Below, in pieces: positions 1,819 through 52,542 of a DNA stretch of 64,000 nucleotides (position 1 is its first letter; every line of letters begins with the position of its first letter). The DNA is taken from assembly GCA_964199315.1 (NCBI GenBank), contig OZ116703.1, forward strand, positions 16,616,001-16,680,000, given 5' to 3'. Both the position numbers and the translations under genes were made by a program. The stretch comes from Orbicella franksi (taxonomy: Eukaryota). The notes below the pieces were generated by a model. It saw nothing but the letters and a program-made list of their open reading frames with translations, was not told the DNA's origin and did no database searches.

Positions 1819-2044
1819 ATGGACCTGGTTCGACATCAATACGTTTACCCGCATCATCATCCGTATCGCCTGGGAGGTATGAGATATGGAGCCGTATCAC
1901 CTTATCAAGTGGTGACCATCCCCCGTTGCACCTGCGAGTGTTACTGCGAGAGGAATCGAGTGCAGTTTGTCGAAGGTGAATCTAGGAACTTGTCGGACCC
2001 CGCTAGAGAAGGACGAGGCAGGGATATGGATGACCTTAAAAACG
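1819..2044 (+). CDS. Divergent PRD-class (Uncx-like) homeobox gene 1, exon 1 of 3 (join 1819-2044,5235-5392,5941-6111; 184 aa)
   Basis: ATG at 1819 in the frame of ORF 1537-2142 (MDLVRHQYVYPHHHPY...DLKN). Phase-1 donor AACG|gtatgg joins in frame to the homeobox exon. The start codon is inferred. Confidence 0.75.
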
Positions 2045-4849
2045 GTATGGTCAGTTTCAAGCTACGTTGTACTATAACTGAGTTTCTTTCCTTTACATTA
2101 TCAGCGAATAAGCAATATAAATGTTTACCAAGTTCTCACTGAGAAGTTCTAAACGAGCCTTTTTGCGGGTTTTAAACATCCGGTTTTATCAAAACACGGT
2201 ATTTAACACGATTTAAACGATGATTACTGCAATTAGTAGGTTCATTTTCGGCCGGTCCAATATCGCTGATCTGGCTTTGTGTGATTTTGTGACTGAGAAA
2301 CGGCAATGAATTCAACTGAAGAACCGGTCCAAAATGGCAGTCTTCGCCTGATGAAATTTTGACTAAAACATTGAACAACACTGAATATTTGCGTCCTTGA
2401 TTTACTCAAGGAGTGGCTGCATTGAGTCAAAATATAGGTTTTTCGTGAAGAAACTTACTGTCAAAGCTTGCATTGCTAAGTTTCTTTAGGGCTCGAATAA
2501 ATCCAGAACTAACTTTCATTAGAGAAAATTCAAGTACCTAATTGTCTTCAAAGCACAAAAACAGTTGCCTTCTGTTGCAGAGGTTAATCTTTTCCACTTC
2601 GATATGGTTTTGTTTCGGAAATGTTTCGATTTCAATGAACAATAGTTCGGTAGCTTTAATAATGAACTTTGATTTCTGATCTCACTTAAGTACTTTTGTG
2701 ATCTCTCTTTTCCGGCTGATAAGAGGCTAATTTCAGATAAATTTAATCGAAAATTATTCCTCTTTTCTACCACTAATGCAAGAAGAGATTTACGCACTGA
2801 TATCAAAATTTGAATCGTATATTGGTTTTCCAGCACGCCTACGGCAAATGGGCAGACGTCCCGATATTTCACTAATAGTAAATGTTTTGTTATACATTTC
2901 ATAGTACAATCCTTCGTGGGCCATGAAACTTTATATCTTGGCATCGTAGTAACTCTCCTTTTTTTTTTAAATAAATAATTTTGTTTCTAATAATAAATGC
3001 TTATTAACGTATGCAGAATCGTTACAACTTAAAATATACAACATTTTCAAACACTTTCGTTCATAGATTGACTTTATTTCGCCCTTCACCCCCATAAAAC
3101 TTCAACTTTCAAGCAGTTCTTTTGTGTTGTAAACCAACTGACTTTGTCACTTCTTCGTCAGTTCTATTTCGCTGTTTTTCAAACAGGAGCGTCAAAACTG
3201 ATCGACTTGAATCAAACGCAGTAAATGTTTTTGACAATGGCCCGGCAAAAGCATCAATTAATTTACGGTATTCGTTTGAAATTCATTTACTAGCTGGCAC
3301 GCCAGAGAAAAAGGAGCGATCGAATGAAGCAGAAATATCAAGGAAGTCCTTTATTTGATATGAATCTCTTCCAATATGTCACTCTTTTACGGATCGATTT
3401 TGACATAAAATTCAAGGTAATTAACTTCCGATCGATACTTTGGTTGGACGATCTTTGTGCAGCTGTCAGCTTATGAAAACAGAAAACCCGCGCCCAACGA
3501 TCACCCTTGTTTTGAAGAATACACAAAAGCAAGTTTTTATATCAACCTTGATTCAAAAATTCACACCATCCAAGTATTTCTTAATTGCTTCATTAACGCT
3601 ATAAATGCAGCCTTCGGGCGGTAAAGATATTTCCCTTACGAGAAATTTGCGTCTAGGTATTATAATTGTAATGATCTACGCAAATTGGTCATTTAAAGCG
3701 AGGAGGTAACACTTAACCGAATAGTTGCGCTCAAAGGATTCTAGTTTTATAATAATATTCTTCTGATAAATCGTTATTCAGTTTTTCTCTTTCAATGTTG
3801 CGGTTTTCTGGCATAATACATATTTTTGAAAGCGAAATGAAAAAAAAAAAAAAAAAAAAAAAAACCCTGGCAAAGTGTAAAGCCATGCTATCCGAAGGCC
3901 AATCAATTTAATTTCGGATAAAATTCGAGATGATACCGAAAGTGTTTTTTTTTATTATTATCATTAAATTATCATTTATTTAACCGATTTTCAACTATTC
4001 ATTTTAGTTTCTTCATATTTTAACTATAAATTTGTTTTTCTCTGTGATACGCATTTATTTAGGATGCATAAAGCAATATTATTTTTAGTGAAATATTTGA
4101 TGTCAATCACGTTTTCGGCCAACCAAAGAATCCCACTTTTATTTGCCTTTCTCCATTTCATCCGGACAGTTTATTTCAGAGCTATGAAGACGCAAAAAGA
4201 AAGAAAGAAAGGACAGATTGAATGCTTGTTTGATTCTCTGGCTGTTTTACTAATCATTTTAAATCGTCTAATTAAATACAAGAAGACCTAGATGTATTTC
4301 TAATAATTGGCGATTTTTCCCTGTGCGCGGTTCAATAAATGAACAAAGGCTATAGTCTCGATCTTGATTGATTCCACTGTGAAATATTCTATGTCATAAT
4401 TTTATCGTGGCATGTCCAGAGACTGTGTTTTACCACCTTGAATACAGTATTAACACATACGTACAGGTGACCGCGGATTTAGCTATTCTGTTGACCTGTG
4501 TAAACTAGAGATGTCCAAAGATGCAAATAACGCCGCTTGCTAGTTAAACAGCGCCTCTGGGAGGGACTTCTTTATGTGAATTGGGTTCACAAACAACTTG
4601 CACCACTTGATTGACAGCTTACACGGTCGGTACCGTTGATCTCTCTTAGACCTTTCCTGATATGCTGTTAAGTGAAGTGTTGGCCAAGCTATCAAGGGTC
4701 CGGATATGTTGGAGTAGCGATAATGATGAAATTAAAACCAGAAATCAAAACCAAATCTCAGTTATGTCTCGAGTTCCGCCGTTAACTTGAATTTAAAGCT
4801 AACAAGTGAAGCATTATTGCCAGACAGTTTGCCACAATAAATCGCAAAC

Positions 4850-5740
4850 TGCATTTAACCCAAGTCCTCCAATGTCTTTTCAAAAATGTCATAGAAACAA
4901 ATTTGAATCTCTGGACTCTTGGGCTCAGCATTCATCGAAAGCTCTGCTCAGTAGCTTTCATTTAAATGGTGACACACTTAAAAGTTATGACCACCTTATA
5001 CACATGTTCACATGTTCCATATAGTGCTACCAGTTTTCATTTTTTGTGGTCACACAGTGAGATTGCAACCTCAGGAAGAAAACACGAGTGGTAGTGAAAA
5101 GATTAAATCCATTTATTTTAGATCCCATCTTAACCCTCGCTTTACTATATTGTTATAAGTCAACGCACTTCTCATTTTCTCTTCAACAAATTCATATGCG
5201 CTCCACTTATTTGTACCGTTTCAATTTTTTGCAGACTTTTGCCACGACAAAACAGGCAGGAGAAACCGAACCACTTACAAAAGATGGCAGATCGATGAAC
5301 TTGAAAGGGCGTTCTCTATTAATCCATACCCGACCAGTGTATATAAGAAGACTCTTGCACTAAGGCTGGGTCTTAGGGACTCGCGAGTTCAGGTGATAAA
5401 CTTTCACATATTTCAATTGAGGAGTCGAAGGAAGGGTTTCATTGCCAAAAACGAGCTTTTCACATGCCAAATGGGGTTGAATTCTACTCTAAGGAAACAA
5501 TACGGTAACAACGTCAAAATACTTCTCAATAGCTTACACTCGGGTTTCATACATGGACTCAAAAGTTACAACCAACTTGCACCACATGAAAGTACTGCTC
5601 AATAGTTTTTATTTGAATGGTCACACAAGAAAGTCCCTTCCACAGATTAAGATGATAAAACCGCCTCGGCAGCCAGCATATAAATAAACTGTACCATTAA
5701 AAATACTGCGCAATAGCTTTCGTTTGAATGTTCAGAAGGA
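4850..5740. repeat. Degenerate intronic repeat units flanking exon 2 of gene 1
   Basis: Core CTGCTCARTAGYTTTYATTTRAATGGTSACAC recurs at about 4944-4977, 5594-5626 and 5705-5734, and partially at 5521-5540. Confidence 0.6.
5235..5392 (+). CDS. Homeobox gene 1, exon 2 (homeodomain residues 1-46)
   Basis: Acceptor ttttttgcag| and donor GTTCAG|gtgata. Translates (D)FCHDKT-GRRNRTTYKRWQIDELERAFSINPYPTSVYKKTLALRLGLRDSRVQ. It is 158 nt, the same length as exon 2 of gene 2. The ORF track misses it. Confidence 0.9.
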
Positions 5741-5940
5741 TTTCAACATCAATGGACAACGGTCTTAAAGACTAAGACCACGTTGATTGCTAGGTATATG
5801 GTTGAACTCACTTTGGGGTGAAACAGGTCAATATACTTCAATGTTAATGTTTAAACCTAGAAATTAAGATGGTCTTACAGATACACAAAGTTTTAAGATT
5901 TTTTTTAAACTGATCTAAACTGATCTGACCGCTCTTTCAG

Positions 5941-6111
5941 GTTTGGTTTCAAAACCGTCGAGCAAAAGCAAAACGGGAAAGGCATGGCTCGACTGAATGT
6001 TACCCCAACGATACAGAGGCTGAACTCACGGAAGAGGAGCAGTCAGCCGACACAGAACATCCGGTTGATGTTGAAGAAAACAAAGAACTCGAACAAGTAG
6101 ATGTCGATTGA
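5941..6111 (+). CDS. Homeobox gene 1, exon 3 (helix 3 plus acidic tail)
   Basis: Acceptor ctctttcag|. Translates VWFQNRRAKAKRERHGSTECYPNDTEAELTEEEQSADTEHPVDVEENKELEQVDVD*. AATAAA at 6248-6253. Confidence 0.92.
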   Translation, partial: VWFQNRRAKAKRERHGSTECYPNDTEAELTEEEQSADTEHPVDVEENKELEQVDVD

Positions 6112-6890: not shown

Positions 6891-6899
6891 TCTTTGTGC

Positions 6900-8380: not shown

Positions 8381-8418
<38 letters not shown>

Positions 8419-15029: not shown

Positions 15030-16171
15030 CAAGTAGGAATCACGATGTCACGAGTTAGTCATGCCCATGATCACATCTATTTCATTTCCGAATCTAGGAT
15101 GCCAATCGCTAAGAGATCAAGTAGACTTTCTAAATCTCAGTTGACATTGTAATTTCGGACTTCTATCTATGATTCAAGGGTCATGATGATGTGAAAGCCA
15201 GCTGGTGTCGAGTCTTTTTGTCAGTTCCAGTTATATAACTATTCGAAGATCATTAAGTTATCTTGACCTGAGTACTTGGACGACGAAAACTTGGACTATC
15301 TGGTTTGGGTGAGTTGTTATTTATTAGATTCTTTTATTAGTTTTCTGCCTTTTAATACATGAGCCATAACGAAACCATACCAGTCGTAAAAAATCTGGGG
15401 CTGTTTCTACATGGATCTACATACAGTCTATATCTGTATTCCGTAGTACAGTCTGAGCTAAACTTCTAACGTCTTGTGTTACATGCGCATCGAACCATTT
15501 AGCAGAAGTGTACCAGAGGATTTTATTTAATAAACCTTGTACCGCGGTATATTGATTTCAAATTGCTCCTAATAGATAATTATAAGCATAAAAAAAAAAA
15601 AAACAATAAGGTCAAGTTAAGGAGGGACATAAGCACGGCTCTTCGCGTACTTTTTTCCCCGAACAAGATAGTCCCATAATAGTGTTCTCGAGATCCGACA
15701 TCTACATGTAAACTGGCTGAGTTCAGCTGATCCGGCGATCTGATAAAAGTTATTCAACAAGCTATAAATCAGTCATCCTTTTGTTTGAAGCTTGGATAAA
15801 TTCATGCTTGAAACAATGAGAGAATCACATCGCCAGATAAAAGATATTAATTAATATGATCTAGAATCTTTTTTTTCCTAACGGAATACTTGCCTCTAAC
15901 TTGTTTGGCAGTAAGGGAGACGAAGTGCTCTCCCGATCCTTCGTTTTCATATCATCTCGAGTATTTCATCATGATGTTGTGAGGTATTGTGCAAAAACGT
16001 CATCTGACTTCTAGTCAAAATCCCAACGTCTTTATAATCTTTAAACGTACGTCTATGCACGTTTATGACCATCTGAATATTATGAACGTTACTTATACTA
16101 CATAACCTTTGATAACATTTCTCATACTTAAAATCATTTCTATTTCAATGAGTGCAAGAGATGGTCTCTCG

Positions 16172-18820: not shown

Positions 18821-20298
18821 TTAGGTGGAGTAAATCCTTCACAAGAAGAAGTGGACACAAAATATTATTAAGCCTTCTTCAAATACTAAAACACACGCTC
18901 CCACAGTACACGGCTAAAACCCGAGACGGGCCATGACACAGAAAGTACATCCAGTCTCATCAAGCACAAAGTACATTGTTAATCAGTAGTAACCATGTTC
19001 ATCTTTCCACCTTGGTCATCTTTCCTTAAGCTTGACAAGCTTTTCTTCTTCATTCTCTTTAAGTCCTTTATTGTCTCATTCAGATGTCTCACAGGCATAA
19101 CCTACCAGCTTGATCTCAGGTTTTCCAGGCATGGTTAGAAAAGAGGAGGAAAGAGATTATAAAAAGAAACAAAATATTTGGTGGATAGTTGAAAGTTTTA
19201 ATATGAACAGAAATCCCCGCAGGCCCGCAGGGAAGAATCTTTCAAGAGTCGAGATTTGCAAGTCAGACAATCTGTCTTAATTGAATTTCCTGGTATCAAA
19301 CTGGATGATCTGCTGTTATTCTCGCTGACAATAATAAACCAATCCAGGCGACTTGCAGAACGTTCGAACTCTCGATTGAATTCCGCTTCTCCCAATTCCA
19401 CCTCAGTTTCAGGAGAAGCGCGATGCAAAGACTGATGGGCTGGAATTTTAGAGAAAACCTTTTCGAAGGCCCTCAGAAAGCGTAAATTAAATCATATTGT
19501 CAGACAGAGCGACAGCAGGGCGTGTGGTCTTAGGTTTTAAATCTCTCAGATCCAAGAAGCGATAGGGAAAATATTCTAGCAATTTAATTGTGAAAGTGAG
19601 TGCTAAATCCAGATGCGCACAGCGATTTCTAAGTCACAGACATGCTTCTGGGCACGGCAACATAAGTCGAGAGCTGTAAGTGTTACCCTTGAAAAAGAGC
19701 TTGCATTTCGCGTTTATACTATCATCGCAGATGAATAGTGGATAAGACCTTGATTTATTGCCGCTTTTAAAATAGAACAAGTAATAAGCAGCGACATCAA
19801 CTCCCAAATCCCTGTAATGAAACTTTATCAAATGTACCCATAACAGCTATTTGTTAGGGTTCGATATCAAGATTGGTAATAGCACTGAAAAGCGCTTACT
19901 GTCTAATCTCTCTTTACCAATCTGCGCAGTGGTAATCATACACTACCAAATTGTTTACACAACAGCTAAGCGTGTAGTATAAACAACCCGAATCGCAAAC
20001 AATTACCAATTAGCCCGCCAAGTAGACAATCGTGCAAAAGTGCGGCTCCGGCCGCCCATGTGTCGAGTGATCTTTGTGGCGTCGGGACATGAGCTTATCA
20101 GCTCTAATTACTTTTGGCGTAATTAGATAATTGGACAGCTGACTTGACGGCTTGTTAGTCATCTCTGCCTGCCTTGCCTGCCAGTGGCCATGGTCTTATG
20201 TTTCTGTTAACAACTAGCATTGCTGTCCTAACGAGGCGCCTAAAGCTTCGGCGCGTAATCAATCCTTCCCTTCTGACGGAAACGAACGCGCGCGTTTT

Positions 20299-20335: not shown

Positions 20336-20369
20336 TGGCGCCGGCTTCCACGGGAGCAAGACAGGGATT

Positions 20370-20565
20370 ATGAATTTTCATCCTGCAACGTTTAATCTCA
20401 TGTTGTCTGAAGGCGAATCCTATGCGCACGCAGCTGGTGGAAATGTTCGCTACTCGTGCGCGACAAACGCTGGAGCAGATGCAAATTTATTCCAATACCC
20501 AGTCACTCTTGGTAGCCTAGCAGACTTGAGTTCCGACTCCGAAGTTGAAATAATCGAAGCCATAG
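20370..20565 (+). CDS. Uncx: Uncx/unc-4 homeobox gene 2, exon 1 of 3 (join 20370-20565,20729-20886,23126-23839; 355 aa)
   Basis: ATG 20370. Phase-1 donor ATAG|gtatgc and a 163-nt intron join in frame to exon 2. Confidence 0.8.
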
Positions 20566-20728
20566 GTATGCATATTTTGAAAATACCTTTGTTTGTAAAG
20601 TCGCGCGTCTCGCACTACATGACTGTCCATACGCGCTCTCGCGGCCTCCTAGCATATCGGTGAACAAAGTTAACGGATAAATCTCTTTCTGTTCCTTTTT
20701 TTTGCTTCGATGCGATGCCATCCTGTAG

Positions 20729-27518: not shown

Positions 27519-27549
<31 letters not shown>

Positions 27550-31719: not shown

Positions 31720-31752
<33 letters not shown>

Positions 31753-36600: not shown

Positions 36601-39600
36601 GGTACAATATGTTGTCGCATTTGCTCAGGGAACGGGCTTCACAACCATAGTTTAGTCGATTGAATCGAGATTTACAGTAAAGTTTAACAACTAACTACAA
36701 TCACACATTAAATATCACATAATCAGATGAAGAACTTTCTTCTTTGTTACAGCAGTTAGCCGCATTCAGTTTCAACAATACACCAAACGGAGGGACGAAA
36801 CCAAAAAACGAAACTATAACCTGTGGCGTCATAAACGTTCCCTTGGCACCCACTGAAAATGCGACTTTCAGTTGCAAAGATAACGGAAAATCGTCCTTTC
36901 ATTAAGATACTCATACACTCATTTTTTTCTTGTAAGAATAAGGTTTTTTCCTGCCTGTTTACCAATTTTCAACACACAAAATTATATTCCTTTCAAAATC
37001 TCAGCCTTGGTTTTGTTTTAACATATTCTTAAAATTTCGCGAATTTCAGCCTCGATATTCTTATAAAATGTATTCTTGTATATAAAAGTATCAGTTCCTC
37101 TTTTCTAGCTAACGATTTACTACTGTAAGGGTTCCATGTGTAAGACGCAATCAGTGGAAATCATTAAAGAACATGGCTAAAAATATCATCATATTGTTAT
37201 GTTATTTTCAACAGTTTCGGTTATAAAATTGACTTAAGAACTATACTTTTGGTTAGGATTGGAAGAAATAAAAACCCAAAGTCGGTTACTGGAACGCCAT
37301 TTTGCGACGCCGTGTTGGATTTTTTTGTGTTACAGTGAAGCAATATGGACTGAGGACAGAGGCACTGAAGGTCGTTTTTGAGGCTTCTTTTTGCGTTTGA
37401 AGTCGTTCAGTGCTCCAGACCAAACCCAACGCCATTGAAAAGTCTTGTTTTAATTTTACCTTGCGGAAATTTGTTAATGAATAGTTCGTGAATTACTTGA
37501 TATCGATGGTTGCAAAGAGATTCCTCAAGTTTTGGTAAAGGGCTTTCGTCTTGTTTCATCTTGTACAGGGCTTTCATCTTATTTCAGAGTTTCACTATCT
37601 ATCAGAAGCGGTGCTGGCGCTAGGAGAATATAGTCTACAGAATGCGTCATGCTATGAGCGTGTACAAATAATAAGACAGATTTTATGCTTGATATTTCGA
37701 CTTTTATCTAAAAATTATTTGAACTTGAAAGTCATTTGAGCATGGTGTAACGATGAATTGTGCGCGCTTAATCACATTTAAATAACGATAACTTCACAAA
37801 TGGTTTTTTTTAAATGAAAACAATAATCGATTAAACTCTGCAATTCGCGGAAGCAATCCTAGAAGCAAGCAGGTAAAGCATTTTCTCAGTGTGTCACAGG
37901 AAATTCAAGCAACATTTATTAGCGAAGAACCAAATATTATTCCAAAGAGAATTCATATAATTGCAGACAGTTTAATGTAGACCTTAGGCCGGACTACGTA
38001 CAAGGGTAACGATCAGTTTTGTAGCATTCCTTATTTTTGATTCTTAGCTAGTAACAAATACATACGATCAATTCGTAGTCTGCTTCAGTCGGCCCATAGG
38101 AAAATCGCCGACTATGCAAGTTGTTGAAATATGCGACCGTATTGAATTCGCAAGCGTGCCGCTAATTCTTGGCTAATTGATTCGTTGCTCAATTTGAAAA
38201 ATAGCGAGAACCTGACAAACTTAATTTCATCTTCAACCGTTTTAAATTAAAGATAAACGCAGCTTTCAAGCGTCAGCTCTGGTTTGGTTATTAAATAGAT
38301 TCTTGGGTAATAAACGTGGTATTTAGCAGGGACATATGCATATCCAAGATAATCAACAGCCAATCAAATTTTCCCTTTGATTTAGGTTAAAGCAACTGAG
38401 TAAAGTTTAAAAATTATGGAAAAATTAAACCTTTCAAACTCTCACAGGGCTGTAAACTTACAAGCAATAAGAGTTAATAAGATGACGCTATCCAGCATCT
38501 ACTGCCAGAGATATGATTCAGACCGTAATTGCCTTGACACCTTATGTAATCACCTTGTCTTCAGTCATTTGGCAATCAAAGAAATGTTATCTTTCTTGAT
38601 ATTTCTTCTCTTTAATTCCTTGACCGTTCCATTAAGATGTTGTTTAGAAAATACCATGTTTAAATGTTGGCAATTAGATGGAGAAAATGTTGCATTTAAT
38701 AAATGACTGAAAGTTTAAGTTGCAAAAACGGTCTTTTAATTTGTATCGATGTATCCAGTGATTCTGCATATTGCAGTTTTTCCTTGGGATCAAACCCTCA
38801 CATTTTTGTTACCATAAATATAAAACTCTGAAGCTTACCAAGCGAAAATTTAGTCATGTAATGCCAGTATTCCAATGAAATGAAAAATAATAATAAAAAA
38901 AACCCCGACAGCATTTGAAACGAAGATAGCTTTAGATCAACTACCTTAAAACAAAATCCAATTTATTGTTATAAACTTTTTAAAAACTACCTTTGTTTGT
39001 AAATCATGGTCTGAAACGTTTTTCTGGCGTTAAATTTTAAACGCTATAATTAACGTTTACCAAATGAAAATATCGTTATGTCACGTTTTTTGTCGAATAA
39101 ATATCCATTTTACTGGTATCATGTTTTATGCAGCTCTTCCCTTTTTCAAAAGAAACTCGTAAACTTTTGTTCCTCGTCAATTTCGAACAACTGTGTTTTA
39201 CACATCTTGACAAACCAATTTTCACCAACGCCCAAAGTTTAACCAGGATCATGGAAAGCCCTTTTGAGCGCTACGAGATCATTAATATTTGCATTTGCAT
39301 TTATTGAGCTTGTATACCACTTAAAACGGATTTAAAGCCAATTGATAAATAAATAAACCGCCGCCAGCAATCTTTTCAGCTGCATTTCTAACTTATTACA
39401 ACACTTTTTCTTCATTAGTAAAACATTTTGACGTTTTGCGTTAGTTTCTTTGAATAGAATGATTTTTCAATTATATTACTGCATTCTGTCGCCTTTTGGG
39501 TATAGTTTCTTAATGACAGTGTTATAACTTATGATGTAGTTTATTTTATTCGCTGTGTCACAAGTTTATAAGATACCACCGATGTTTTTTAACCGATTAG

Positions 39601-41378
39601 TCAGTTTAAAGGATTCTTATGTGAAGTCCTTGCGAGGCTAAGAGATACCGCCAAATTTGGTTTTGTCTTTGAGCGGCCCGTCTTTAGAACAGATGTACAA
39701 ACATGCCTGTTATTATACTTGGTACTCCATTGCAATTAAAGGTAATACGGCGTTTATTACCCGAGGAAAACAGTACCCCTTTTCGTTTCTCTGTCTCTAC
39801 TGCGTGAAACTGACTACTCTGAACCATGGAGCAATATTTCAACCACGACAGGAAAAACTTTTATCAGGTAGGTTGTTGCTTACTGCAACAGTAGTGACCT
39901 GTTATTAGAAGGAGACTAAGCGATTATCGTTTTGTTGTTTCTGATCCTTTTGTTGTTATCTGCGCAAAGGAAAGGGTGATAATAGCTAAATTACCCCGTA
40001 ATGTTTCACAGCTTGGTTCGGTTTCACTTCATTACCGATCTGGTAACATCCGTCCATTGTGAGTTTCTGCTATCAGACTGTACTGAAATTTTTGCGCTAG
40101 CAATGTACACTATTTGTTAGATATTGCTAAATAGACTCGAGTTTGCGAGTTTGCGAAATGAATTGGCTTGCTTTAGTCAAACGCTTAGATCCTAAAGAGA
40201 ACTTTCAGTTTGCTAAATTCCCTTGTAAGCTGACGGGCTCTGAGAACTTCTCTTTCGTCTTTATAGCCGCCGCGCTTTATCTAGTTTTTCACTGACTAAA
40301 TTAAAAACGAGAATCATAATTCTAGCCTTGGTACCAGGGGTTTCAGTTTCACGTTTTCCCGAGTGGAGATGAAAAAAACTGTTTCGTATATATGGTGTGG
40401 AAATCCCATGATTCGCTATGCATAGCTGCTGAATTCAGTCAAAGCAAAACCTTCCTCAGTATTGGGTTAACTTACTACTCTAGGAAAAGCGTGGATTTTA
40501 AACTTCATAAATCACTGATGGTTTTCTGTAATTTACTGGCTTAATATGCTCCACTTTCACGGATCTTCGTGAAAATAGTCGAGTCATCCGAGAGAAGACT
40601 GGAACTGATAAGACTGTTTCTTGGACAGTGTCTTGACTGATGTATCGTGTTTTAATAGGTGCGGTCAAGAGCTGGTATAAATTTGCTTTATTGTCTTGCA
40701 ATAGAATCGAAAGGAAAAAAAAAAGGGCAAAAACAGTGGAAGGCAAAGAAATTCAGTGCAACTAAAAGGAAATAATAATAAAATCAGAATAGTATACTAT
40801 CAGAATAGTATAATCGTCCAAATACTTTATGTGTTTATAATAATGTATTTTCTCTGTAGAATACTTTTGTCCAATTTATTTGGTGGCATTTGGCTATATG
40901 TTAGTGGAAATTAGGAAAATTAGGGTCCTCTACTGAATGGGCTGGGACACTTTTCAAGCCTGGTTTTCATTTTATCCGGCCGGGGCGCGCTTAATCTCAA
41001 AGAAAATTTGCGAAAATTCGAGTTCCTGTCCCAAATTATTTAGTGCATGGTAGAATGGCCTTCTTTTTTTATCGCTAGCTCTCTCCAGAACACGAGAAAT
41101 GACCCAGTGCATTTCGGGGGCGAGTTAAGCGGCCGCCCAAAAATCAAGCAAACCAGCTCTCGTGGTCACGATTAAATGAAGTACAAATGCAGCATCATCC
41201 ACTTCATAAAGCCTGTGATTCCTAAATCGAAACACGATATTCCGAAATGCGTTGTTTACTAATCTAAAAATCACTTTGTGGCGTATTCATCTTGTCGATA
41301 TTTCCAGAATGCGCCTATTGCCCAAAGTGTCCATGAAAAAAAAAGAAACAAATCTGCAGAGTTTGGGAGAAGGAGGGG

Positions 41379-42136
41379 TAGGCTTTGGTAGATTGTGCTA
41401 GCATAATTTTTAGCATAATTTAGAAAAACGAGCATAATTTAAAGCTTTTATTTCAGTTTAGCATTGCTAGCATAATCCGAGCTTTTATGCCTTGAAAACA
41501 AAAAAAAACCCATCATAGTTCTAGAATAATTCAGTTTGTACTTTACTTCTGTATTGTTATTGGAAAATATCGAGGTCTGGAAGACTCTAGCTAGGTCACC
41601 CCGTACATATCTGAGAGGCTGAGACTCTCCTCAGGCCACCACGCTTATGGCTCGGCCCCTCAGGCCTTAGATCAAAGATGGCGTCGTCCTCGAGTACATC
41701 CACTGATTCCACTCCCAGCACTTCCAGCACTCCCAGTGCCGTACCGAGAGCTTCAATCTCTAGAGAACGTGTTCCTAAAAGTAATACTGGAAAGTACAAG
41801 GAAAGAGGTAACTCAGATCCAAAGAACATGAGTCTTCGTGATCGAATCGAAGAATTTCCAGAGGAAAATTTGTGTCTTCGAGGTGGAAAACTGTTTTGCA
41901 ATGGGTGTAAGACTGTAAGACTGGAAGGTGGACTGTCTGAATGTTCATTAAAGTCAAAATTGATAGAGTTAAGCTACTGGCGATCTTTATTTTCCTTAAA
42001 ATCCAAGTAGCATAACTTCGGTGACAGAGAGCATAATTTTCAGAAAGTAGCATAATTTTGGCATAATTTCTAAAAAATATGAGCACTGCTAAAAGCATAA
42101 TAAGCTTTTTTTTCGAGCACAATCTACCAAAGCCTA
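41379..42136 (+). mobile_element. Internally deleted hAT transposon (758 bp), CGGBP1-like lineage
   Basis: Perfect 21-bp TIRs TAGGCTTTGGTAGATTGTGCT and perfect 8-bp TSD AGGAGGGG (41371-41378, 42137-42144). Multiple AGCATAAT subterminal motifs at both ends. Confidence 0.93.
41678..42010 (+). pseudogene. Truncated transposase N-terminus (CGGBP1/BED-like zinc-finger half)
   Basis: SLRDRIEEFPEENLCLRGGKLFCNGCK resembles human CGGBP1 TPLDRVTEFGGELHEDGGKLFCTSCN (from memory). Similarity stops after CxxC at a tandem GTAAGACT (41907-41922), and the His ligands are absent. Confidence 0.75.
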
Positions 42137-45100
42137 AGGAGGGGACAAACTGTAGTGTGCGCCGTCGAACTGAATGCTTGGTGTAATTCCCATCGACATT
42201 TCATCCCAATTTCAATGGATGTATGATAAAATACAGAGGTCGGACAAAAAGAGCGTTTAAACAAGATATTAGGAACGATATGGAGGTCTAAATGCAGTGT
42301 GCTCATTCGACTCAGTTGCCCCCAAAATAAAATGAATTAATCAAAAGCTGGCCCAAATTAAACACTGATTGATGCTACATTTCATTCGCTTCATCATGAA
42401 GAGGGTAACAAAGGCGGGTTGTGATCACGTTTCGAGCACGAAGTTTAACGAAGTTCACGCGTCACATTTAATTTTAGCTACTGTTAACGATGTTTTCGTT
42501 TTTCATAAATACACGAATCACGTATGTCTTTTTGTTGCTATTCACGAGTCAGACACTAATTTTCTGCCTTCATCAGATGCCACACATAATTCCTTTGAAC
42601 TCAGTTCAAACAGGTTGTTTTCCTCTGCAGTAAATAAATGTTTGCAAGCAAACTTTTCAAACCAACATGATTAACAGCGAAATGTCGTTGGAGATGCTTC
42701 TCAGTGTCTTTGGTCTTAATGAAAAGGAATGCAATTTTCTGTTTGAATAGCCGGTATAGACTCGCTGGTAGGTCTACATAACTGGTGGATATATTCGTAT
42801 AGACCACCAGTAAGTATACACGTTTGTTGATAACTCAGTGGTGACGCACTTTCTATTGATAACTGGTTCAAATTAAACCCATTAAAGTGAGCTTCCCGTG
42901 GGAAAGGTCCGCACGCTTGAACAGAAAATAAACAACATCGTACTGCCTTCATGTTGTGAAAATAACACGAACCTGTTATGTTATGTTATGTAGCGAAATT
43001 CGCATCATAAAAAAAAATCGACCACATGTCAGTGAAGAAATGCAGTTGAAATAAACTAAAATAATTATAATTTGTGCAAAGCAAGTAAAATCATTTACGT
43101 GAGCTAGAAAATACCAGAGAATCCACTGGTTAAGGTTTCATAACACTTTTTACCTTTCAGAACCTTAAATTTATAATATTGACTTTGTTTCTTTTGTGTC
43201 AAAATGTATCTCATCTTTTTGGCTTCTTATTTCGTTAATTATTTAATACGACCATTATACCGTTCAGTTTTTTTCTTATTCCAGTACTTTTTGATGTTGT
43301 TTTGGTCGTTTCAGTTATGATACGCATCTCGAGCTTGAACTTGTATCATTGGCTGCGGTTTAATTGGACTTTTGTCAATATCGACCCGTAGAAATACTAT
43401 GCACAGAATTATACCACACGTAAAATTTACAACAATGCAATTTCAAATAATGAATGACAGCAATCGCGTTTGGCACATAACCCGTTTCTGCTTAGTTCTG
43501 CTTGGTCAAAACTGATACATCAAAGATCATTATATCGTGATACGACATATGGTGGCATAGCGTCATTTCAAATGCTCACTTTGATGTAAAGACGAATTTT
43601 TTGACGAGCTACTAAAGGCAAAGTAGAAAAGACGGGCCATTGTTTCTGATAGTCGATCTGATTTAAGTCGTGAATCAAGAACTCTGCAGGTTTAAACGTT
43701 CATCCGAAAGCAGACTAAAACAGGGGCGTTTGAACATCACAGTTCTTCGGCAATGTACATTTGACAAAGGCCTGCTTCGGCCACTCCTTTGGAAGAATAC
43801 AAAATACGGTCAAACCTAGCAACTTCCCTTACATTCAAAACCTCTTTCATTGTCTTTTAATCAGTTTTACTCAGCATGAAAAGGGGTGCGTGCATGCATC
43901 TCTAACTTCCTTCCAAAGAGAAGTCAAAAGAACGTCCTTCATCAGTAGATGCGTGGTGTTGGATATGACGAGATTCGGTACATAAGAGTTCGAAACCCTG
44001 AATAAAACACGTTTATTTTCAAATTCTAAAACAGTAAAAACACGGTAAGTCAGACCTACAATCCATTCTTTATTCCTTCTGTAGAACAGGTAGAAGACAT
44101 AAAAAATCCGCATTAAATTTGTTTGATGAGCATTTTCTCTGAATAGGGCACCAGTTTGAACGGTGTCAAGCCCCCTACTGTTTGGCGAATAACACCATGT
44201 ACCATGCGGTTACCACTTCTGTGCTAATTCAAGCGCCTTTCTCGTTGCCTAGACCGCGAAGCCTTAATTTTAACAGCCGTTTTCAGTCCACTGAAAAATA
44301 ATGTACTTAACTTTTATGTTGAACTTAGAAATCCAATCTCTAACTGACAGAGCGATTCGAACAGTTAACTATATAGTACTTCGGCTTCAACAACACTGGG
44401 TTCATTTGCCTGTCGTTTACGCCGTTTACTTTAACTCCGTGAAACTATCTTAGCTTATTTCTGGCTGAAAATAACTAAATCGAGTTATTGCTTGACCCGA
44501 TTTTAACCAAGTCTACACGCGAATTTTTGTGGTTAACTAAAATCAAAAATTCAGTTCTAGTTTTGTTATTACGTTTGTGATTAATTTAAGATTTGCGCAT
44601 TGCGAAACGCCCGTTCATGTGTCATTCGATTACAAACTACAACTCTAGATGATTTTGGTGTTTTCTATCCTATTAATTTATCAAAGTTCAGTATCTCGGC
44701 TTAAGTTTGAGAATGTAAAGCGTTGCTTTTTTTGGCTCCATTCTGATAACAACATACTCATTGTTAACGGTGGGCTAGCAGATGTAGGCTCGTATGGAAT
44801 TACGTTTCTTTATGATGCAAATATTTTCTATAGTGATGTCCATTTTGATACATGTAGATGAAACAATTTCTCTTCGTCTTGAACAACACGATACTGCGAT
44901 ACTCTTTAAGTAATGTTGTTTTGTACTACATACACCAGGTCGGTCGCGTGGGTCAAACAAAATTAATTAAAGCGCGTTTCTTGTTTTGTTGTGCCGGGAT
45001 GCCGAAGTGTTGGCCTGGAATGCATTGACAGAAAAGAGCAGATTTTAAAGTTCCACTTGTTCAAAATCAAATGATTTTCATATGAACAGAAACGGTGATG

Positions 45101-48100
45101 AAAATTAGAACTACAAAAGAAATCATTGTTGGGCAGTTTGGTTTGTTTTTTCATTGAACTCGTTTTATAATCGCTGAGCACGTTTTTCACACCCACGCTC
45201 TGGCGTCAGTAAAATGCAAGAGAAGTTGAAGTAGAGTGATATAGAAAATGGAAATAAATATGTAGTTAGTTACGTTGGCATACTGCTAAAAAGACAGACG
45301 GTCCGCCAGCGTTATTGATTTTCCTTTCAATCTAAAGCTTTACAGAGTCATCAGTGTTTACCATGGTTTAAGAGTAACAGTTCGACGCAACAGATTAAGG
45401 CTTTTTCGCAAGCTAAGCTAATGTAAATCTTAAGTCAGATTAGAACTACAATTGTTTAAAAGAAATACGCGCTAGAAAAAGGATTAAAGGGCTGATTTTC
45501 TACCTGCTACAGTGGTTTAGCTTCTTTTATTTGACCGAAAGTTACAAAGAACAGCGGGTTGCAAACATATCTAATTAAGGTCATTAAGTATCTACCCATT
45601 CTGTAACTAAGAGATGGAGGAGGCGAATAGGTAGCGCAAGCAAGGATTTTGCCGCGGGCGAGAAAGAGAAAGCAGATTATTTAAAAACAATGAAGCGAAG
45701 TCGTCGTTGCTCCAGTTTCGTCTCAAACATCAGGTTATTTAACGGTGAATAAACTAAGCAGGTATAAACCGTTAAGTCTGAATACGTCGTATATTCGTAG
45801 CTGGAATATGAAGGACATTCAGTTGATTTATTTAAGTTGCAAAAGTCTTCAGAAAAAAAATATTGACAACGATTCCTTATGCGAGTCATTTCAACATCGC
45901 AAAATCAAGTTATCTAAGGCTTTGTTAGACTATCACAGATCTGCGTGACTCAATGAATGATATTCACTTGGTTTCCGTGCACAATCCAAAAGGCCATCCT
46001 ATAGCCGGCGCGGCGGGTTGTTTTGCTCAAAAATTTCCTTTCACTGAGAATGGGTTCATGAAAATAAAAAAGCGCTGATCTAGCTTTTGGAAGGTAAATA
46101 ATCCATAGCCTCTGGCACCAGCTTTGCCTTTTGATAATATATTGATTTAAAAGCTGTTTTTCATGTCCTTCAAACGCAGACCTAACAAAACGGAGTTTTA
46201 ATTTCTTTTTAAAAGCCATTCTATTTGGTCATTGGCCAACTTTGGTTTTCAAAGGTCATTAACGTTGATACAATACACAATAACACTGAGTTAACATGTA
46301 ATTATACTTTTCTACAACGAGAAAAGATCTTCGCTCAGCTGTCGTTAAAGTAGTTCGGCAATTCTTTTGCTTCCTAGGAGATCATGACTGCATGAATGTG
46401 GTCTAAGTCATTGCACAACCACAAAGTGAAACATCCTCAAAAATCAAACTTTCTTTCTGGCTCTACCGGGACAGGCTGCACGGAACTCTGTAGCTCGATC
46501 AATAAAAAACCTTATTGGGTTTCATTTGCAGTTGGAGACAGGTGCATCCTTACACTGCGAAAAGACAAAACAAAACTAGGTAAAATAATGGTCACAATAT
46601 CAAATTCCTGTTTACTATGTGGACCTCACCACAAGCTCGAATTTTTTACGAGATGACTGACGTGTGCCTTGTTATCGTTCTCACCGGGAGCGATGACAAG
46701 GCACGGGCAGGCAAGCAATTGTGCAAGCGGGTCGTTTAACAGTTTCTATCGCTTTTAGTATACCCAATATCGTCGTTAACACTTTGCCTTGGAGTTTCTT
46801 CTTTAATGTCACGCAGTGGAGTGCGTTTAGAAACGTTTTTCTATGAGGAATTGACACGTCTGGTCACGTGATCAGCACTTGCTCTTCAGGACAATGAGAG
46901 AAGAGTATTTGGTTAATGGCCATCAATTTGAAGGCCTGCTTACTCAGCTGACGAAGATGTGTCTTAAATCCCTTTTTAATATTTTTCTTGAAAAACAACC
47001 CTGAAGAATACAAATGATCCCAACGCAAGTTTCAAGTTTCCTCACATTGTTTGATAAGATTATTGTTTAAGAATTTGATCTTCATTGTTTTCAATATATC
47101 TAATTTCGATAGCTTGGTTAGTTTCCGATGTCTTATCATGCTTAGCTAAGCGAAATCTGGCGGTTTGTTTACTTCACTGAAGGTCTTCTAACTACACTTG
47201 CAAAACTGGGAAACCATGGATTTGTTTTTGTATATCGTCTAGCTGGACCTAGTTGAATTTAAGAAAAAGGTTTTATAAAAATACAGAGGAAAATAACACA
47301 GACCATGTTCCGTGCTACTCTTTTTTTGTTAAGAAGCCCCTACCATCTGCCATTTTTAATCTGATACAATGTTTACAGCTCGGTCAATTTAACATTTCTG
47401 TCTTTTTTGTCGTCTGTGGCCAGTCAGTGTCGATAAAGGAACAGAATATAGCAGCCCTTAATAAGGTGTTGTCTCTCAATTTTCATGACAGTTTCGGGGA
47501 TGTTCGGGTGAGGGGTTTAATTAAAATCTTAAGACATTTACCTGCAATGGAAACTAAGTACCGATGGAACAACGCAATCCCTTCATAATTGTCATTAGTC
47601 TGCGATTAGAGAAAAAAAATCGTGAATAATAAAAGGCAAACGAAAGGAAAACGAAAAGCTTCAGTCGGAAAAAAAAAATAGGGAAAGTGTTATTTTGATG
47701 GCCGTTTAGTTGCTAATTATTCAGCCGAATTTTAATTTACCTTGGTTGATGTTGAGGTGTGTGATCGTCTATAATGATGAATTTATTTTCAATTATTTCT
47801 AGATGGAGCTAGCTAGGCAAATGAAAGGCTGCAAATTAATTAATCATTACTCGCGCTGTTGTTCTGTTCTTTGAACAAGACAAACGTACTCGACTGAACA
47901 CTGACAAGTTGACAACAATCCGATATCGAACGTAAAGTCTTCATTCACAGCATTTCAAATCTCGTCTTTTTGTTCCTGTCCTGGTTTAGGATAGCTCCTC
48001 TAAACGTGTGACCATTTGCTCCGCGCGGCTTTGTTCAGGCGACGTTAAATTCCTCATTCGTCGAGAGGCTCGAAAGAGCATTTGACGCGTATTTTGCGCC

Positions 48101-48781
48101 CCTAATTTCGAGTCTCCTTATTACATGAGGAATAATTCATTAAAATATCACTTGTGATCCTATTAGCTCTAAGCTAGATACCAGCTGTGCATACGATAAG
48201 CAGGTGAAATTTTCGTACCTCCCACAATTCAAATAGCAACATGGAGTGTTTGCCCTAAAATGGCAACCGATTCGAATCCACATTGAAGCGTTGACAGCAC
48301 GACCGTGCTAACTGGCTCACGTCAAAATATCCATCACGGCTACATCCTTAGGAAAATTTCTTTGGCTTACCAGTGTGCGATATTCTGTGGGTTAATTCAG
48401 TGTTCCCCTTGTTAATTAGGCAAATCATTTTCCAGTCCCAAGCCTTTCACGCCCGAGCGCAATTTGGCGTCGGTCCGCGGCAGCCGACCAATCACAAGGC
48501 GGCAAGCGGAAAACAGCAGCTCTTAGAGGCCTTTGTATTATATTATGACCAGTTGATTGAATAGTTATTTGATTTGCAAACTTCAGGATGAGCAAAGAAT
48601 ACACTTCAGAATTCATTGTATAATTCCATTAGCAAAAAATAATAGGCAGACTTTAAATATCGCCATAATTTGATATTTGTAGTCAGTCATTTGTCCGCGC
48701 ACCTCATCGCATCAACATCGAGCACCGTTTTAGCAAACTAATCTGCGTCAACACCAATACTGTGAACCGGTCATTTTACTT

Positions 48782-49043
48782 ATGATCATGGAAAGTAACT
48801 TACAAGGGCATCCTCATCCTACATTTTTTCAGTCGCCGTTCTACGCAATGGTTTCTCCCCGTGGACAGAACCTCTCTAACGCTGCCAATTTGCCGTACGC
48901 CACGGCCGATACTTGCTGCAGTGTTCCCAGCTACCTGCCGGCTGCCTATCACCACTCCTTCGCTGGTCGACCGTACGAAGTGCCTTGTGTGTATCACCCA
49001 GCCTCCTACGTAGATCCTCAGCTACAACTTGCGGCTTTTCAAG
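48782..49043 (+). CDS. Uncx: Uncx/unc-4 homeobox gene 3, exon 1 of 3 (join 48782-49043,50079-50257,52096-52542; 295 aa)
   Basis: ATG 48782 (or 48788). Pro/Tyr/His-rich N-terminus. Phase-1 donor CAAG|gtaaga. CCAAT at about 48488 upstream. Confidence 0.82.
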
Positions 49044-50078
49044 GTAAGAATAAATTTTACTTTTCAATCGCAAAATAATCACTTTTAAATCGCGTGAACC
49101 AATTTTAAGCTCGGAGTTTGTTTTGTGATTCATTTTGTCTTTGAGCTGACTCGCAACATTAAGTAATTGTTCGTGTCGCTAAAAATCGTATTAACTAATT
49201 TGTTCTTGACATTTTAGGGGCCGATAACACCGTGTCAAATTCTAGATGAACTCATGATTAGATAAAAAGACAGTGTAGAAACTAAACACGGTGATTTTTC
49301 ACTGGATTATCTTTGGCGATAACCGAGATTTGAGGATGAACTAAAAGATAACTGTAGCAAATTAAAGGTCGGCTTTGTTATCAAGATTTTCTTTCCGTTT
49401 TATTCTGCCTCTTGGTAACGAAAATATAAGAGAAATATTTCCCTAGCAAGCTAATACGTTAAACAAAACAGAAGCAAAAAATAATCTCAATATTGCTTTT
49501 CCCAATGTTATAAACAAGCGACGAAGAAATTAGCGTTCAGTTTACGTTCCCGAGGAAACGGTTTTCAGTTCAAAAATTAGGAAAATTTGTGGCGTCGCTT
49601 AAACAAATGCTTTTTTAAAAAAATTCAGAGTGTTGTTTAAGACAAATTTGTTAATTATGCGTGTCACGTATTTATGAATCCGAAATGACGAACACTATTT
49701 CACTTTTTGTTGAAATGTTTTTACGCTTAAGGACACGATTTCTACTCATAAATTGTATTTCCTGGATGAAAGCGCTAAACAAAGAAATAACACATCAAGA
49801 TATATTTTAGCCGTTATTATCTTCTTTGCACTTTAGAAGAATAACTTTCCTGGCTTTGGCTGAAAAGAAACAATGAATATTTTTTCCTGAGTATGTCTGG
49901 TTGATAACGGAAAAACAAAGTGGGGAATACTGCAATTTTCCTTTCACATGTTACTGACAAATCAGAAAAAAAAGAACATTCCTAGCTTTTCATTCGTCAC
50001 ACCCTAAAATAAAGAAGTTGATTGAAAGAAGAGCAACCAGTGTTAATGAAGTCACTTGTAATTTTATTCTGCCCACAG

Positions 50079-50257
50079 GCCAGAGATTCTTAGATCATTT
50101 ACGCCCTCACAAGCCCCGAAGAATGCGAGTTCGAACAAACTTCAGCCCGTGGCAACTAGAGCAGCTCGAACGCGCGTTTGAGACGACCCATTATCCTGAT
50201 GTTTTCATGCGCGAGGCTCTTGCCCTGAGATTAGACCTCACGGAAGCCAGAGTCCAG
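50079..50257 (+). CDS. Uncx: Uncx gene 3, exon 2 (homeodomain 1-46)
   Basis: Acceptor gcccacag| and donor GTCCAG|gtacaa. [46 protein letters not shown] is close to the UNC-4/Uncx consensus. Confidence 0.95.
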
Positions 50258-52095
50258 GTACAACTTATGTTTCTTCACCTTCTACAAAACACGATTTACT
50301 TCTGGGTTTGCTTTTTCGTCTCTGCTCTTCCAGTTCTTTTTGATGCTAAACACACCCTCAGGTTTACTTCGAATATTGTTTTGAACGTAAGAATCTGATG
50401 CAAGAGATCCAGGCCGACAGACACAAGAAAAACAATTTCCTTCTGGATAGGAGTTTTCCTTTTCTTTGTTCTATATACGTGTATGTTCTACAAAAAAAAA
50501 AATATGTTTTAAAGTTGGTCAGTTCATAATCTACAAGTTTGCGCAATTATTACCTCCTGTTCACGACTCATTCCTGCTCTGTCATACATCGCAGCTTTAC
50601 CTCCCACGTGAAGCAGCTGAGTTTCACACACGAAATAAAACATTTATTCAAACTGTTTCTTATTTGTCTTCTAAACCTCGCTCGCGAGACCCTGATTTCA
50701 GAATTAAATCCAGAGAAAAAGAAAAACAGAACAAGTTATAAGAGTCATTCAATAACACATCCTTTTTTACAAAACTTTCCAAGTCTATTCAGACATAAAG
50801 AGTCGTACCGTAATATCGAACAAATTTAGTACGAGAAACAAAAAAGTGTTTCTCGGTCGAAAGGTTAAGGAAAAAGGTATACAGTTGTTTCCTAATTTTG
50901 ACGTTGTGTCACTTAGTATCTGTTTCACTGTGTTAACCTGTTATCCTGATATTTAGACACGTTATCCGTTAATTCCCTTTTCGCTTACATTAATAGATGA
51001 CAGGTGGGAGGGTAGTAACTAGCCAATGAAACCCGCCAACCAAAGCAAAGCGGAAAGCCCTGACTAATTCGATTGAACTAGGAACACATTGTCTTCTCTT
51101 TGGAAGCTCCGTCTCACTAAAAACAAAATAAATCAAACACGAAAATCTAAAACATCGAAATCACCAAACACATGAGAACATTTATCATTAATCAATGTTA
51201 TCGACCACGATAGCGTTCGTCTTTCTTTAATGGTTGGCACGAGCGACGATTTTTTAAAGAAAGAAGCAATTATTTTCCCCCCTCGAGGATGCGATCTTTG
51301 TTTGTAACGAACGTTATTGTTTTGGCTGAATATTTATCGCCACACTTGGTTCTTTTCTTCTCTGTTTCAAAATTCAAAGCGTGCTATACCGCGTTCTTCC
51401 TCCTTTATTTTCCTTTAATTGGAAATTTTTTAATCAAAGGAATCGAAATAAAAGTACCAAATGTTACTCTCCCATCTGCAATGTGCTTTCAGACTCCAAA
51501 CCTCCGGTAAAACTGCTCGGCAGATCGAGTAGTTTCAATTCGTCGTTTTGTATTTTCCGCAGTTACTATCAACAGTTACATTAGAAAAACAGAAACGGGT
51601 AAATGTTATCTAAACCAAAATTGACAATAGTTGAGTTAAAATGCAAATTTTCATGTTCAACTGATCATTCAAGTGTCGCTGTGTATTGTTCAATTCCACA
51701 GCGGCCATTTACTTGGAAGAAAGGAAAAATTGCTATCTAACATTTTATTTATCCCATGTTGGCACATAAACATCCTGAAAGCGTCAATTTTGACTTCACT
51801 TGTTGTATAAAAAGGTCTTTTACTTGAGAGGTAAACAAATTTTCAGTTATTCGCTGTCTCATAATGCCAACGCAAAAAAAGTTTAAAGATCATTGTTGAA
51901 ATTTGCAATGAAATGTCTCTCCAAACATTCAAAAAGACCAGTCGCTTTCGTTTTATTAATTGCGATAAATATAATAAAGGTTATTGTATAATACCACATG
52001 CCGCACAAATCTTACTGCGAGAAAACAATGCTTTTAAGGTGGTTTTTTCAGACAGTAAAGTGTCTTTAAACTGACTCCTTGTTGCATTTTCTCAG

Positions 52096-52542
52096 GTATG
52101 GTTTCAGAACCGTCGAGCAAAATGGCGGAAGCGGGAGAAAGCGAAAGATGGTGAAGATGGGCAGAAAGATTCAGATAACAACGAGGAAACGGAGGCGAAT
52201 CAAGAAAAGAGGGAAACGGACGGAGAAGAACGAGAATTGAGCGGCGATATGGTAATTAAAAGAGAAAAAGACAGCGTGGAACACGAAGGACAAGATACAG
52301 GAAATGGAGAGAAATCGGAGGACGAATATCGTCAGGAAGATACGCGAAAGCCAGTGAAGGAAGAATTCCCAGCGCAGTGTGGGCGTTTTAAGGGATGCGC
52401 GGGTCATGCGTACAGCGACAAAGAACACAGTTCAAGAGATTTCGATTATTTTGAGAAGATAAGAACATCAAGCATCGCTGCTCTCCGACGAAGAGCAAAG
52501 GAACACGAAGTACTTCTCACGTCACAGAACTCTGTGATTTGA
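52096..52542 (+). CDS. Uncx: Uncx gene 3, exon 3 (helix 3, acidic linker, OAR motif)
   Basis: Acceptor ttttctcag|. VWFQNRRAKWRKREK..., with RTSSIAALRRRAKEH at 52462-52506. In frame with ORF 52237-52542. Confidence 0.94.
   Translation, partial: VWFQNRRAKWRKREKAKDGEDGQKDSDNNEETEANQEKRETDGEERELSGDMVIKREKDSVEHEGQDTGNGEKSEDEYRQEDTRKPVKEEFPAQCGRFKGCAGHAYSDKEHSSRDFDYFEKIRTSSIAALRRRAKEHEVLLTSQNSVI

Follow-up and report, generated by a model that had tools for sequence, protein, structure and literature searches.

We analysed a 64,000-nt stretch of the genome of the coral Orbicella franksi (assembly GCA_964199315.1, contig OZ116703.1, positions 16,616,001 to 16,680,000 of the forward strand), hereafter the window, which holds a group of homeobox genes of the paired (PRD) class. 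It belongs to C6 of this 497-Mb scleractinian assembly. A six-frame motif scan of the window recovered three exons encoding helix 3 of the homeodomain (VWFQNRRAK), all on the + strand, at 5941, 23126 and 52096, and an exon for helices 1 and 2 was present upstream of each. Neither the scan nor a search with exon 2 of gene 3 revealed a fourth homeobox of this kind in the window. The resulting genes 1, 2 and 3 (1819-6111, 20370-23839 and 48782-52542) are + strand, three-exon, paired-like homeobox genes with glutamine at homeodomain position 50 (Q50). An initial annotation had put three + strand genes about 14 and 25 kb apart; the measured gaps are 14,258 nt between genes 1 and 2 and 24,942 nt between genes 2 and 3.

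Reading of the splice sites gave proteins of 184, 355 and 295 amino acids (aa) for genes 1, 2 and 3. In all three genes, as first annotated, the first intron is in phase 1 and lies before the homeodomain, the second lies between homeodomain codons 46 and 47, and the homeodomain carries W11-Q12 as well as Q50; the second intron is in phase 0. The length of exon 2 reported for genes 1 and 2, 158 nt, was re-measured as 158 nt in both (179 nt in gene 3), and the homeodomain identities counted by hand were identical to the computed ones: 32/60 for genes 1 and 2, 30/60 for genes 1 and 3, and 41/60 for genes 2 and 3. The exon 2 peptides match the Pfam Homeodomain profile with E values from 4e-11 to 2e-13. 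The combination of Q50 with the 46/47 intron places all three among the PRD-class paired-like genes. A GT directly after homeodomain codon 46 was also found in 19 other PRD homeodomain exons of the coral genome.

All exons described here are on the + strand. Exon 1 of gene 1 (1819-2044) runs from the ATG to a phase-1 donor and contains a conserved Cys-rich motif, PRCTCECYCE (1921-1950). Exon 2 (5235-5392, 158 nt) encodes homeodomain residues 1-46, with Y8 and W11 (Pfam E = 4e-11), and exon 3 (5941-6111) encodes residues 47-60, an acidic tail and the stop. In gene 2, exon 1 (20370-20565) aligns with orthologues of 355-363 aa. It is followed by exon 2 (20729-20886, 158 nt) with homeodomain residues 1-46 and the sequence RTNFDAWQL (E = 7.5e-13), and by exon 3 (23126-23839), which encodes residues 47-60, an eh1-like motif C-terminal of the homeodomain (FSIESIL, 23348-23368), a tail (23771-23818) that is OAR-like by eye and gives no match to Pfam OAR, and the stop. 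In gene 3, exon 1 (48782-49043) matches the orthologues of Stylophora, Actinostola and Nematostella, exon 2 (50079-50257, 179 nt) encodes homeodomain residues 1-46 with the N-terminal arm RMRVRTNF (E = 2e-13), and exon 3 (52096-52542) encodes residues 47-60, an acidic linker, an OAR motif (52462-52509; Pfam OAR E = 4e-7, 30 bits against a cut-off of 20.1) and the stop.

The models of all three genes agree residue for residue with full-length orthologous proteins across the junctions. Gene 1 matches proteins of 184-205 aa from Desmophyllum, Oculina, Porites, Acropora and Stylophora and anemone proteins of 202-221 aa from Actinia, Actinostola and Nematostella; gene 3 matches proteins of Stylophora, Actinostola and Nematostella. 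Gene 2 aligns across both junctions with proteins of 342-363 aa from other corals, and its homeodomain is 95-100% identical among the coral orthologues. Several of these coral proteins sit on contigs of 1.2-1.9 kb. Since the introns of gene 2 total 2.4 kb, such contigs are too short to hold them and represent spliced transcripts. Of the named species with matches, Oculina patagonica is the closest relative. A database protein that is 99% identical to exon 3 of gene 2 and starts inside intron 2 was rejected as an isoform, being a gene call made on genomic or unspliced DNA from O. franksi.

In O. franksi itself, both junctions proposed for gene 1 were present in polyA RNA contigs. The assembly contains GT..AG joints at 2043>5234 and 5387>5936, and the cut offsets bring them to exactly 2044 joined with 5235 and 5392 joined with 5941; the orthologues align across the first of these as well. 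The read-level check in this species covers gene 1, and the models of genes 2 and 3 rest on the spliced orthologous proteins together with the shares of RNA words. Of the words sampled from the gene 3 region, 28-41% were present in RNA runs of several studies; for the gene 1 region the share was 16-45%.

Homologues were searched for with the homeodomain of gene 2 (against 5.8 billion proteins) and with exon 2 of gene 3 (against 1.8 billion representatives). W11 proved to be common to three bilaterian groups, which we here name subfamilies A, B and C. Subfamily A is Uncx/unc-4 proper, with the arm RRRTRTNF, a helix 3 starting with ESRVQ and full-length proteins of 400-500 aa. Subfamily B comprises short proteins, most of them with an OAR motif, from sharks, ray-finned fishes, frogs, lungfish, amphioxus and Saccoglossus, with RANYSSWQL and IEARVQ. 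Its members carry the database names Prrx2, Vsx2, Rx1 or unc-4, and no mention of the B-type zebrafish gene dkey-43p13.5 was found in the literature searched. Subfamily C consists of proteins of echinoderms, hemichordates and amphioxus with the arm RMRVRTNF, an N-terminal eh1 motif and an OAR-type tail, which are listed as Alx1-like, Rx1-like or ceh-8-like. A protein of the scyphozoan Rhopilema esculentum with the C-type arm RMRVRTNF also falls in C. With up to three linked subfamilies, deuterostomes do not conform to the earlier statement that most bilaterians have one gene. In the literature searched, neither the anthozoan cluster nor the subdivision into A, B and C was found to be described.

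Similarity alone does not make genes 1-3 one family, since exon 2 of gene 3, used as a query, recovered 34 PRD-type exons in the coral genome, among which gene 2 was only the fourth best and gene 1 the last. The W11-type unc-4/Uncx signature that had been read in all three genes is more telling. In the set used for the homeodomain tree, every one of the 45 sequences belonging to A, B, C or the groups of genes 1, 2 and 3 has W11, and none of the 18 other PRD homeodomains of the coral genome does; it was also seen in none of the further PRD exon hits listed. Exact re-splicing of nine further family genes (three anthozoan and six deuterostome) showed the same exon plan, with a phase-1 intron 6.7-21.7 codons before the homeodomain and a phase-0 intron at 46/47. 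Exon 2 is 179 nt long in the anthozoan orthologues of gene 3 (this coral, Nematostella and Actinostola) and 158-161 nt long in gene 1 and subfamily B.

Phylogenetic placement was based on two trees. The homeodomain-only tree (63 rows, 60 columns) included the 18 other PRD homeodomains of the coral genome, and the full-length tree (257 columns) covered A, B and C with the gene 2 and gene 3 groups. In the former, the 18 other homeodomains split from A, B, C and the three gene groups with support of 96/93, and genes 2 and 3 stood among A, B and C. The gene 2 clade fell inside A (86/91), and B formed a clade of its own (88/86). In the full-length tree, the gene 3 clade joined C at 96/93, and A and B were recovered at 99/97 and 99/99. 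The approximately unbiased (AU) test rejected genes 2 and 3 as one clade (p = 0.008) and all three genes as one clade (p = 0.033). The membership in the Uncx group first claimed for the whole trio is in this way upheld for genes 2 and 3, but it is not shown for gene 1, which is discussed below.

Individual sequence characters point in the same direction. M2 and V4 are common only to gene 3 and C, and the homeodomain of gene 3 is identical to that of C at 53/60 positions, as compared with 47/60 for A. Together with the arm RMRVRTNF, the Pfam OAR match and the clade with C, these features lead us to regard gene 3, firmly, as an orthologue of subfamily C, which is distinct from Uncx proper and so far unnamed. 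The N-terminal eh1 motif of the bilaterian C proteins is absent from the anthozoan gene 3 proteins. As for gene 2, the motif F[ST][IV][DE]x[IL]L was found after the homeodomain in 11 of 12 A proteins and in all five gene 2 proteins, where the coral version, FSIESIL, corresponds to the eh1-like motif of subfamily A. It occurs in none of seven B, six C and four gene 3 proteins and is absent from gene 1. Gene 2 is most likely an orthologue of Uncx/unc-4 proper, an assignment that we make with moderate confidence. Given the sampling, the sequences also argue firmly that the lineages of genes 2 and 3 would have split before the cnidarian-bilaterian divergence.

The initial annotation proposed that the paralogues are kept in synteny. 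In Stylophora, the three genes lie on the + strand of scaffold LSMT01000047.1, with gene 1 at 892-907 kb, gene 2, a homeobox gene of 356 aa, from 915.5 kb and gene 3 at 941.9-945.6 kb; order and orientation are as in the window, and the spacing is close to that of the window. In the sea anemone Actinostola, genes 1 and 3 have the locus tags 018108 and 018110, and exon 3 of gene 2 is on the opposite strand, some 4.4 kb past gene 3. A block at 60450-60609 of the window, at the edge of a called PIG-Y gene, is 85% identical to Stylophora DNA and 72% identical to Actinostola DNA located about 9.8 kb upstream of gene 3. The three species thus have a common neighbour flanking gene 3, which is inverted in Actinostola. 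Synteny is kept in Stylophora and, as consecutive loci, in Actinostola, but not in Nematostella, where genes 1 and 3 share a chromosome at a distance of 11.4 Mb. In Nematostella, neither the 120 matches listed for the gene 2 homeodomain nor the DNA up to 10 kb from gene 3 included an orthologue of gene 2. According to a published table, Nematostella and Acropora digitifera have two Uncx genes each (PMC7642931).

Members of the subfamilies are also linked in deuterostomes. On Ptychodera CM083797.1, a C gene (19,894,508-19,903,034) and an A gene (19,921,406-19,932,337) lie on the + strand with a gap of 18.4 kb and nothing called between them. In Saccoglossus, C and B are 59 kb apart at a scaffold end, and in the tarpon Megalops A and B are 119 kb apart, with B beside INTS1. 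A and C apparently share a chromosome in Lytechinus, Amphiura and Antedon, as do A and B in amphioxus and the lungfish Protopterus; these five cases concern the chromosome and not the distance. The spacing between A-type and C-type genes is 25 kb in the window, about 26 kb in Stylophora, about 4 kb in Actinostola and 18 kb in Ptychodera. Orthologous A-type and C-type genes are therefore adjacent in more than one phylum, which we take as the mark of an ancient cluster and which does not extend to genes 1 and 3 of Nematostella. Because the counterparts of genes 2 and 3, as separate lineages, also stand side by side in hemichordates, the pairing of the two probably predates the split between corals and bilaterians.

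Taken together, these results make it likely that the window contains the coral version of an ancient cluster of paired-like (Q50) genes of the Uncx group. Gene 3 would represent subfamily C and gene 2 most likely subfamily A; the two lineages would have separated before the cnidarian-bilaterian divergence and have since remained neighbours in corals, a sea anemone and a hemichordate. Gene 1 would be a short, divergent and expressed member of the cluster.

Several observations weigh against it. The trees are short (60 or 257 columns), the root of the group is not fixed, and no protostome B or C protein was included. The full-length tree gives little support (52/20) to the grouping of gene 2 with A, a placement of gene 2 with B was not rejected by the AU test (p = 0.42), and gene 2 has L56 in common with some B proteins. 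In raw homeodomain identity to Uncx proper, gene 3 (47-49/60) surpasses gene 2 (43-45/60); gene 3 does not group with A in the trees. As regards gene order, the cluster is broken in Nematostella, gene 3 is inverted in Actinostola, and the succession is A then C in the coral and C then A in Ptychodera.

What we can say of gene 1 is that it is a short, divergent, expressed gene conserved across Hexacorallia, with a putative link to the Uncx family. A sizeable possibility, although one we hold to be less probable than not, is that gene 1 is an independent orphan PRD-class gene of Hexacorallia that lies beside an Uncx pair and acquired W11 by convergence. In the homeodomain tree, the branch leading to gene 1 and its orthologues is very long and joins near the centre; placing gene 1 outside the Uncx group costs only 1.1 log-likelihood units and was not rejected (AU p = 0.41). 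The exon 2 peptide is 45-48% identical to any paralogue, with genes 2 and 3 ranking no better than Rx-, Hbn- and Arx-like genes, and gene 1 was the weakest of the 34 hits obtained with gene 3. It lacks the OAR, the eh1 motif and the conserved N-terminal motif of B. The database names of its relatives conflict (siamois, Hox-C8-like, Vsx1, unc-4), and its look-alikes in PDB and the ESM Atlas are generic PRD proteins (DUX4, ALX4, OTX2, goosecoid, dharma), which assign it to no family. The 11.4 Mb between genes 1 and 3 of Nematostella are also in keeping with an orphan. On the other hand, W11 occurs in no other PRD homeodomain of the coral genome examined, and the 18 other homeodomains separate at 96/93 from a set that includes gene 1. 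Gene 1 has the phase-1 intron and the 158/161-nt exon 2 in common with the family, it has stayed linked to gene 2 in Stylophora and Actinostola, and its Y8 is otherwise found only in subfamily B.

The last of these features touches on a more specific idea, namely that the coral trio matches the deuterostome subfamilies one-to-one, with gene 1 as B, gene 2 as A (Uncx) and gene 3 as C. In the best tree gene 1 does pair with B, weakly (52/62), and exon 2 measures 158 nt in gene 1 (161 in Nematostella) and 158 and 161 nt in B. We regard this correspondence as tentative and rather unlikely. If true, the cnidarian-bilaterian ancestor already had a three-gene Uncx cluster, of which amniotes kept only A.

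That the three genes arose from a single ancestral Uncx by tandem duplication within cnidarians or anthozoans appears very unlikely. Such duplicates could be expected to look much like the coral trio, in tandem on one strand, with a common exon plan and, in genes 1 and 2, an exon 2 of the same 158 nt. Published surveys likewise assume one ancestral Uncx: in Nittoli et al. (2019; PMC6543554), a single ancestral gene with lineage-specific local duplications is inferred. However, the exon plan is the same in the deuterostome members and is therefore no pointer to recent duplication, and the characters of the subfamilies cross phyla (M2 and V4 in gene 3 and C, the post-homeodomain eh1-like motif in gene 2 and A). 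Since gene 3 groups with deuterostome C at 96/93, and a clade of genes 2 and 3, like one of all three genes, was rejected, genes 2 and 3 did not arise from one Uncx by duplication within cnidarians. The "old cis-duplicated Uncx mini-cluster" of the initial annotation was thus right about a real, old and syntenic PRD-class cluster with W11 and mistaken about duplicates of one Uncx, at least for genes 2 and 3.

Least credible of all is an independent, secondary clustering of A and C in corals and hemichordates; the different order in Ptychodera, the different orientation in Actinostola and the dispersal in Nematostella could be cited for it, but tandem-duplicated paralogues are expected to be adjacent from the start, and family members are linked in all chromosome-scale genomes inspected (O. 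franksi, Stylophora, Actinostola, Ptychodera, Saccoglossus and Megalops) and apparently share a chromosome in three echinoderms, amphioxus and lungfish.

An ancient cluster of Uncx-group genes can be compared with what is known of the Uncx/unc-4 family. What the coral cluster has in common with its members (unc-4 of C. elegans, unc-4 and OdsH of Drosophila, vertebrate Uncx, Nematostella Uncx) is the paired-like Q50 homeodomain with RTNFxxWQL and YPDVF.REALAL.LDL, the 46/47 intron and eh1-like motifs. In the homeodomain tree, gene 2 falls with the Uncx of bilaterians, whose eh1-like motif after the homeodomain it also has. Gene 3, which is named unc-4 in Stylophora, belongs to a sister subfamily and not to Uncx proper, and gene 1 has only W11, the exon plan and the linkage in common with the family. 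In Nematostella, Ryan et al. (2006) listed one UNC4 and seven unassigned PRD homeodomains (PMC1779571).

Linked Uncx-type genes are also described by Nittoli et al. (PMC6543554, citing Irimia et al. 2012): an "Uncx duplet flanked by Alx" was noted for Saccoglossus, Capitella and Drosophila, and for amphioxus a pairing of Uncx with Rx. The Saccoglossus scaffold studied here is probably the same region. In contrast to that account, which reads the neighbours as Alx or Rx, the Saccoglossus protein named "ALX homeobox protein 1-like" and the amphioxus protein named "Rx1-like" by NCBI carry W11 and Uncx-type helices and fall in subfamilies C and B. We infer that B and C proteins with such names may be the "Alx" and "Rx" neighbours of that paper. 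In our data, C has cnidarian members and B has vertebrate members.

The distinction between the subfamilies matters for comparisons between cnidarians and bilaterians. According to He et al. (2023; PMC9882047), Uncx takes part in segment polarity in Nematostella and serves as evidence for a segment-polarity programme common to this animal and bilaterians; the presence of two to three non-equivalent paralogues in anthozoans is of importance there. For NvUncx, neither a gene identifier nor a primer is given in the preprint, which states that medusozoans have no bona fide Uncx. The Nematostella gene named "ALX homeobox protein 1" is C-type. If it is true that this gene is the "Uncx" studied, it is not an orthologue of vertebrate Uncx, and the comparison reads differently. 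Our results also call for a correction of annotations in corals, anemones, echinoderms, hemichordates, amphioxus and fishes, in which genes named Alx1-like, Rx1-like, ceh-8-like, Prrx2-like or Vsx2 would be Uncx-group genes.

To our knowledge, few homeobox clusters are known to be older than the cnidarian-bilaterian split, namely Hox/ParaHox, NK and Homeobrain-Rx-Orthopedia (HRO). A further PRD-class cluster would mark ancestral genome organisation and test regulatory constraint on linkage. The closest parallel is HRO, a three-gene PRD-class cluster conserved in Cnidaria and Protostomia (Mazza et al. 2010; PMC2938728), which is likewise a small set of related PRD-class genes linked since before the cnidarian-bilaterian split. 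It differs from the coral trio in that it consists of other families on another chromosome; the members of the trio are closer paralogues of one another, and the conservation of the Uncx-group cluster covers Cnidaria and deuterostomes. We also noticed an HRO-like trio in the coral genome at C1:44,340,000-44,374,000, where three PRD exons within 35 kb, all with the 46/47 intron, are Otp-, Rx- and Hbn-like by eye. Dense arrays of PRD-type homeodomain exons lie at C9:9.28-9.42 Mb (about 11 hits) and C15:20.76-20.87 Mb (about six hits), with K50 or S50 in several of them.

As to function, all three proteins would be expected to bind TAAT-type sites, as known paired-like homeodomains do. By analogy with UNC-4 and UNC-37, gene 2 may recruit Groucho through its eh1-like motif and act in repression. 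The OAR tail modulates activity in other paired-like factors and might do so in gene 3. Gene 1, with neither eh1 nor OAR and with a conserved Cys-rich N-terminal motif and an acidic tail, may act differently. The long-kept linkage suggests regulatory entanglement, and the genes could be held together by shared or interleaved regulatory DNA in the gene-free intervals.

Ten long open reading frames in the non-coding stretches of the window (intergenic, intronic and flanking) gave no Pfam hit, which is consistent with gene-free intervals and does not prove them. In a blastn comparison with the Stylophora loci, introns and intergenic DNA contained colinear blocks that were 70-90% identical. Between genes 1 and 2, about 9% of the interval aligns to Stylophora, including conserved non-coding blocks upstream of gene 2 (19262-20181; 19262-19340 at 90% and 19475-20181 at 72%). 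Of the 10.6 kb upstream of gene 3 (38161-48781), about a quarter aligns, in eight colinear blocks (e.g. 39277-39429 at 87% and 47775-48781 at 76%), and similar blocks occur downstream of gene 3. These alignments show conserved non-coding DNA, not enhancers common to several genes.

Some repeats were observed within the genes. In gene 2, a 219-nt unit is present as two tandem copies (22701-23141) with 83% identity, which extend across the end of intron 2 and the exon 3 acceptor at 23126. At the gene 1 locus of Nematostella (15601-16034 of the extracted stretch), the 3′ part of the homeodomain exon recurs in three degenerate tandem copies (period about 154 nt) in intron 2, just after the real exon 2. 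Finally, a 47-nt element in intron 2 of gene 1 (about 5581-5627) reaches a depth in the thousands both in raw reads and in RNA contigs from three runs. It has loose ends on both sides and joints that go back 47 nt, and looks like a short repeat present in many transcripts.

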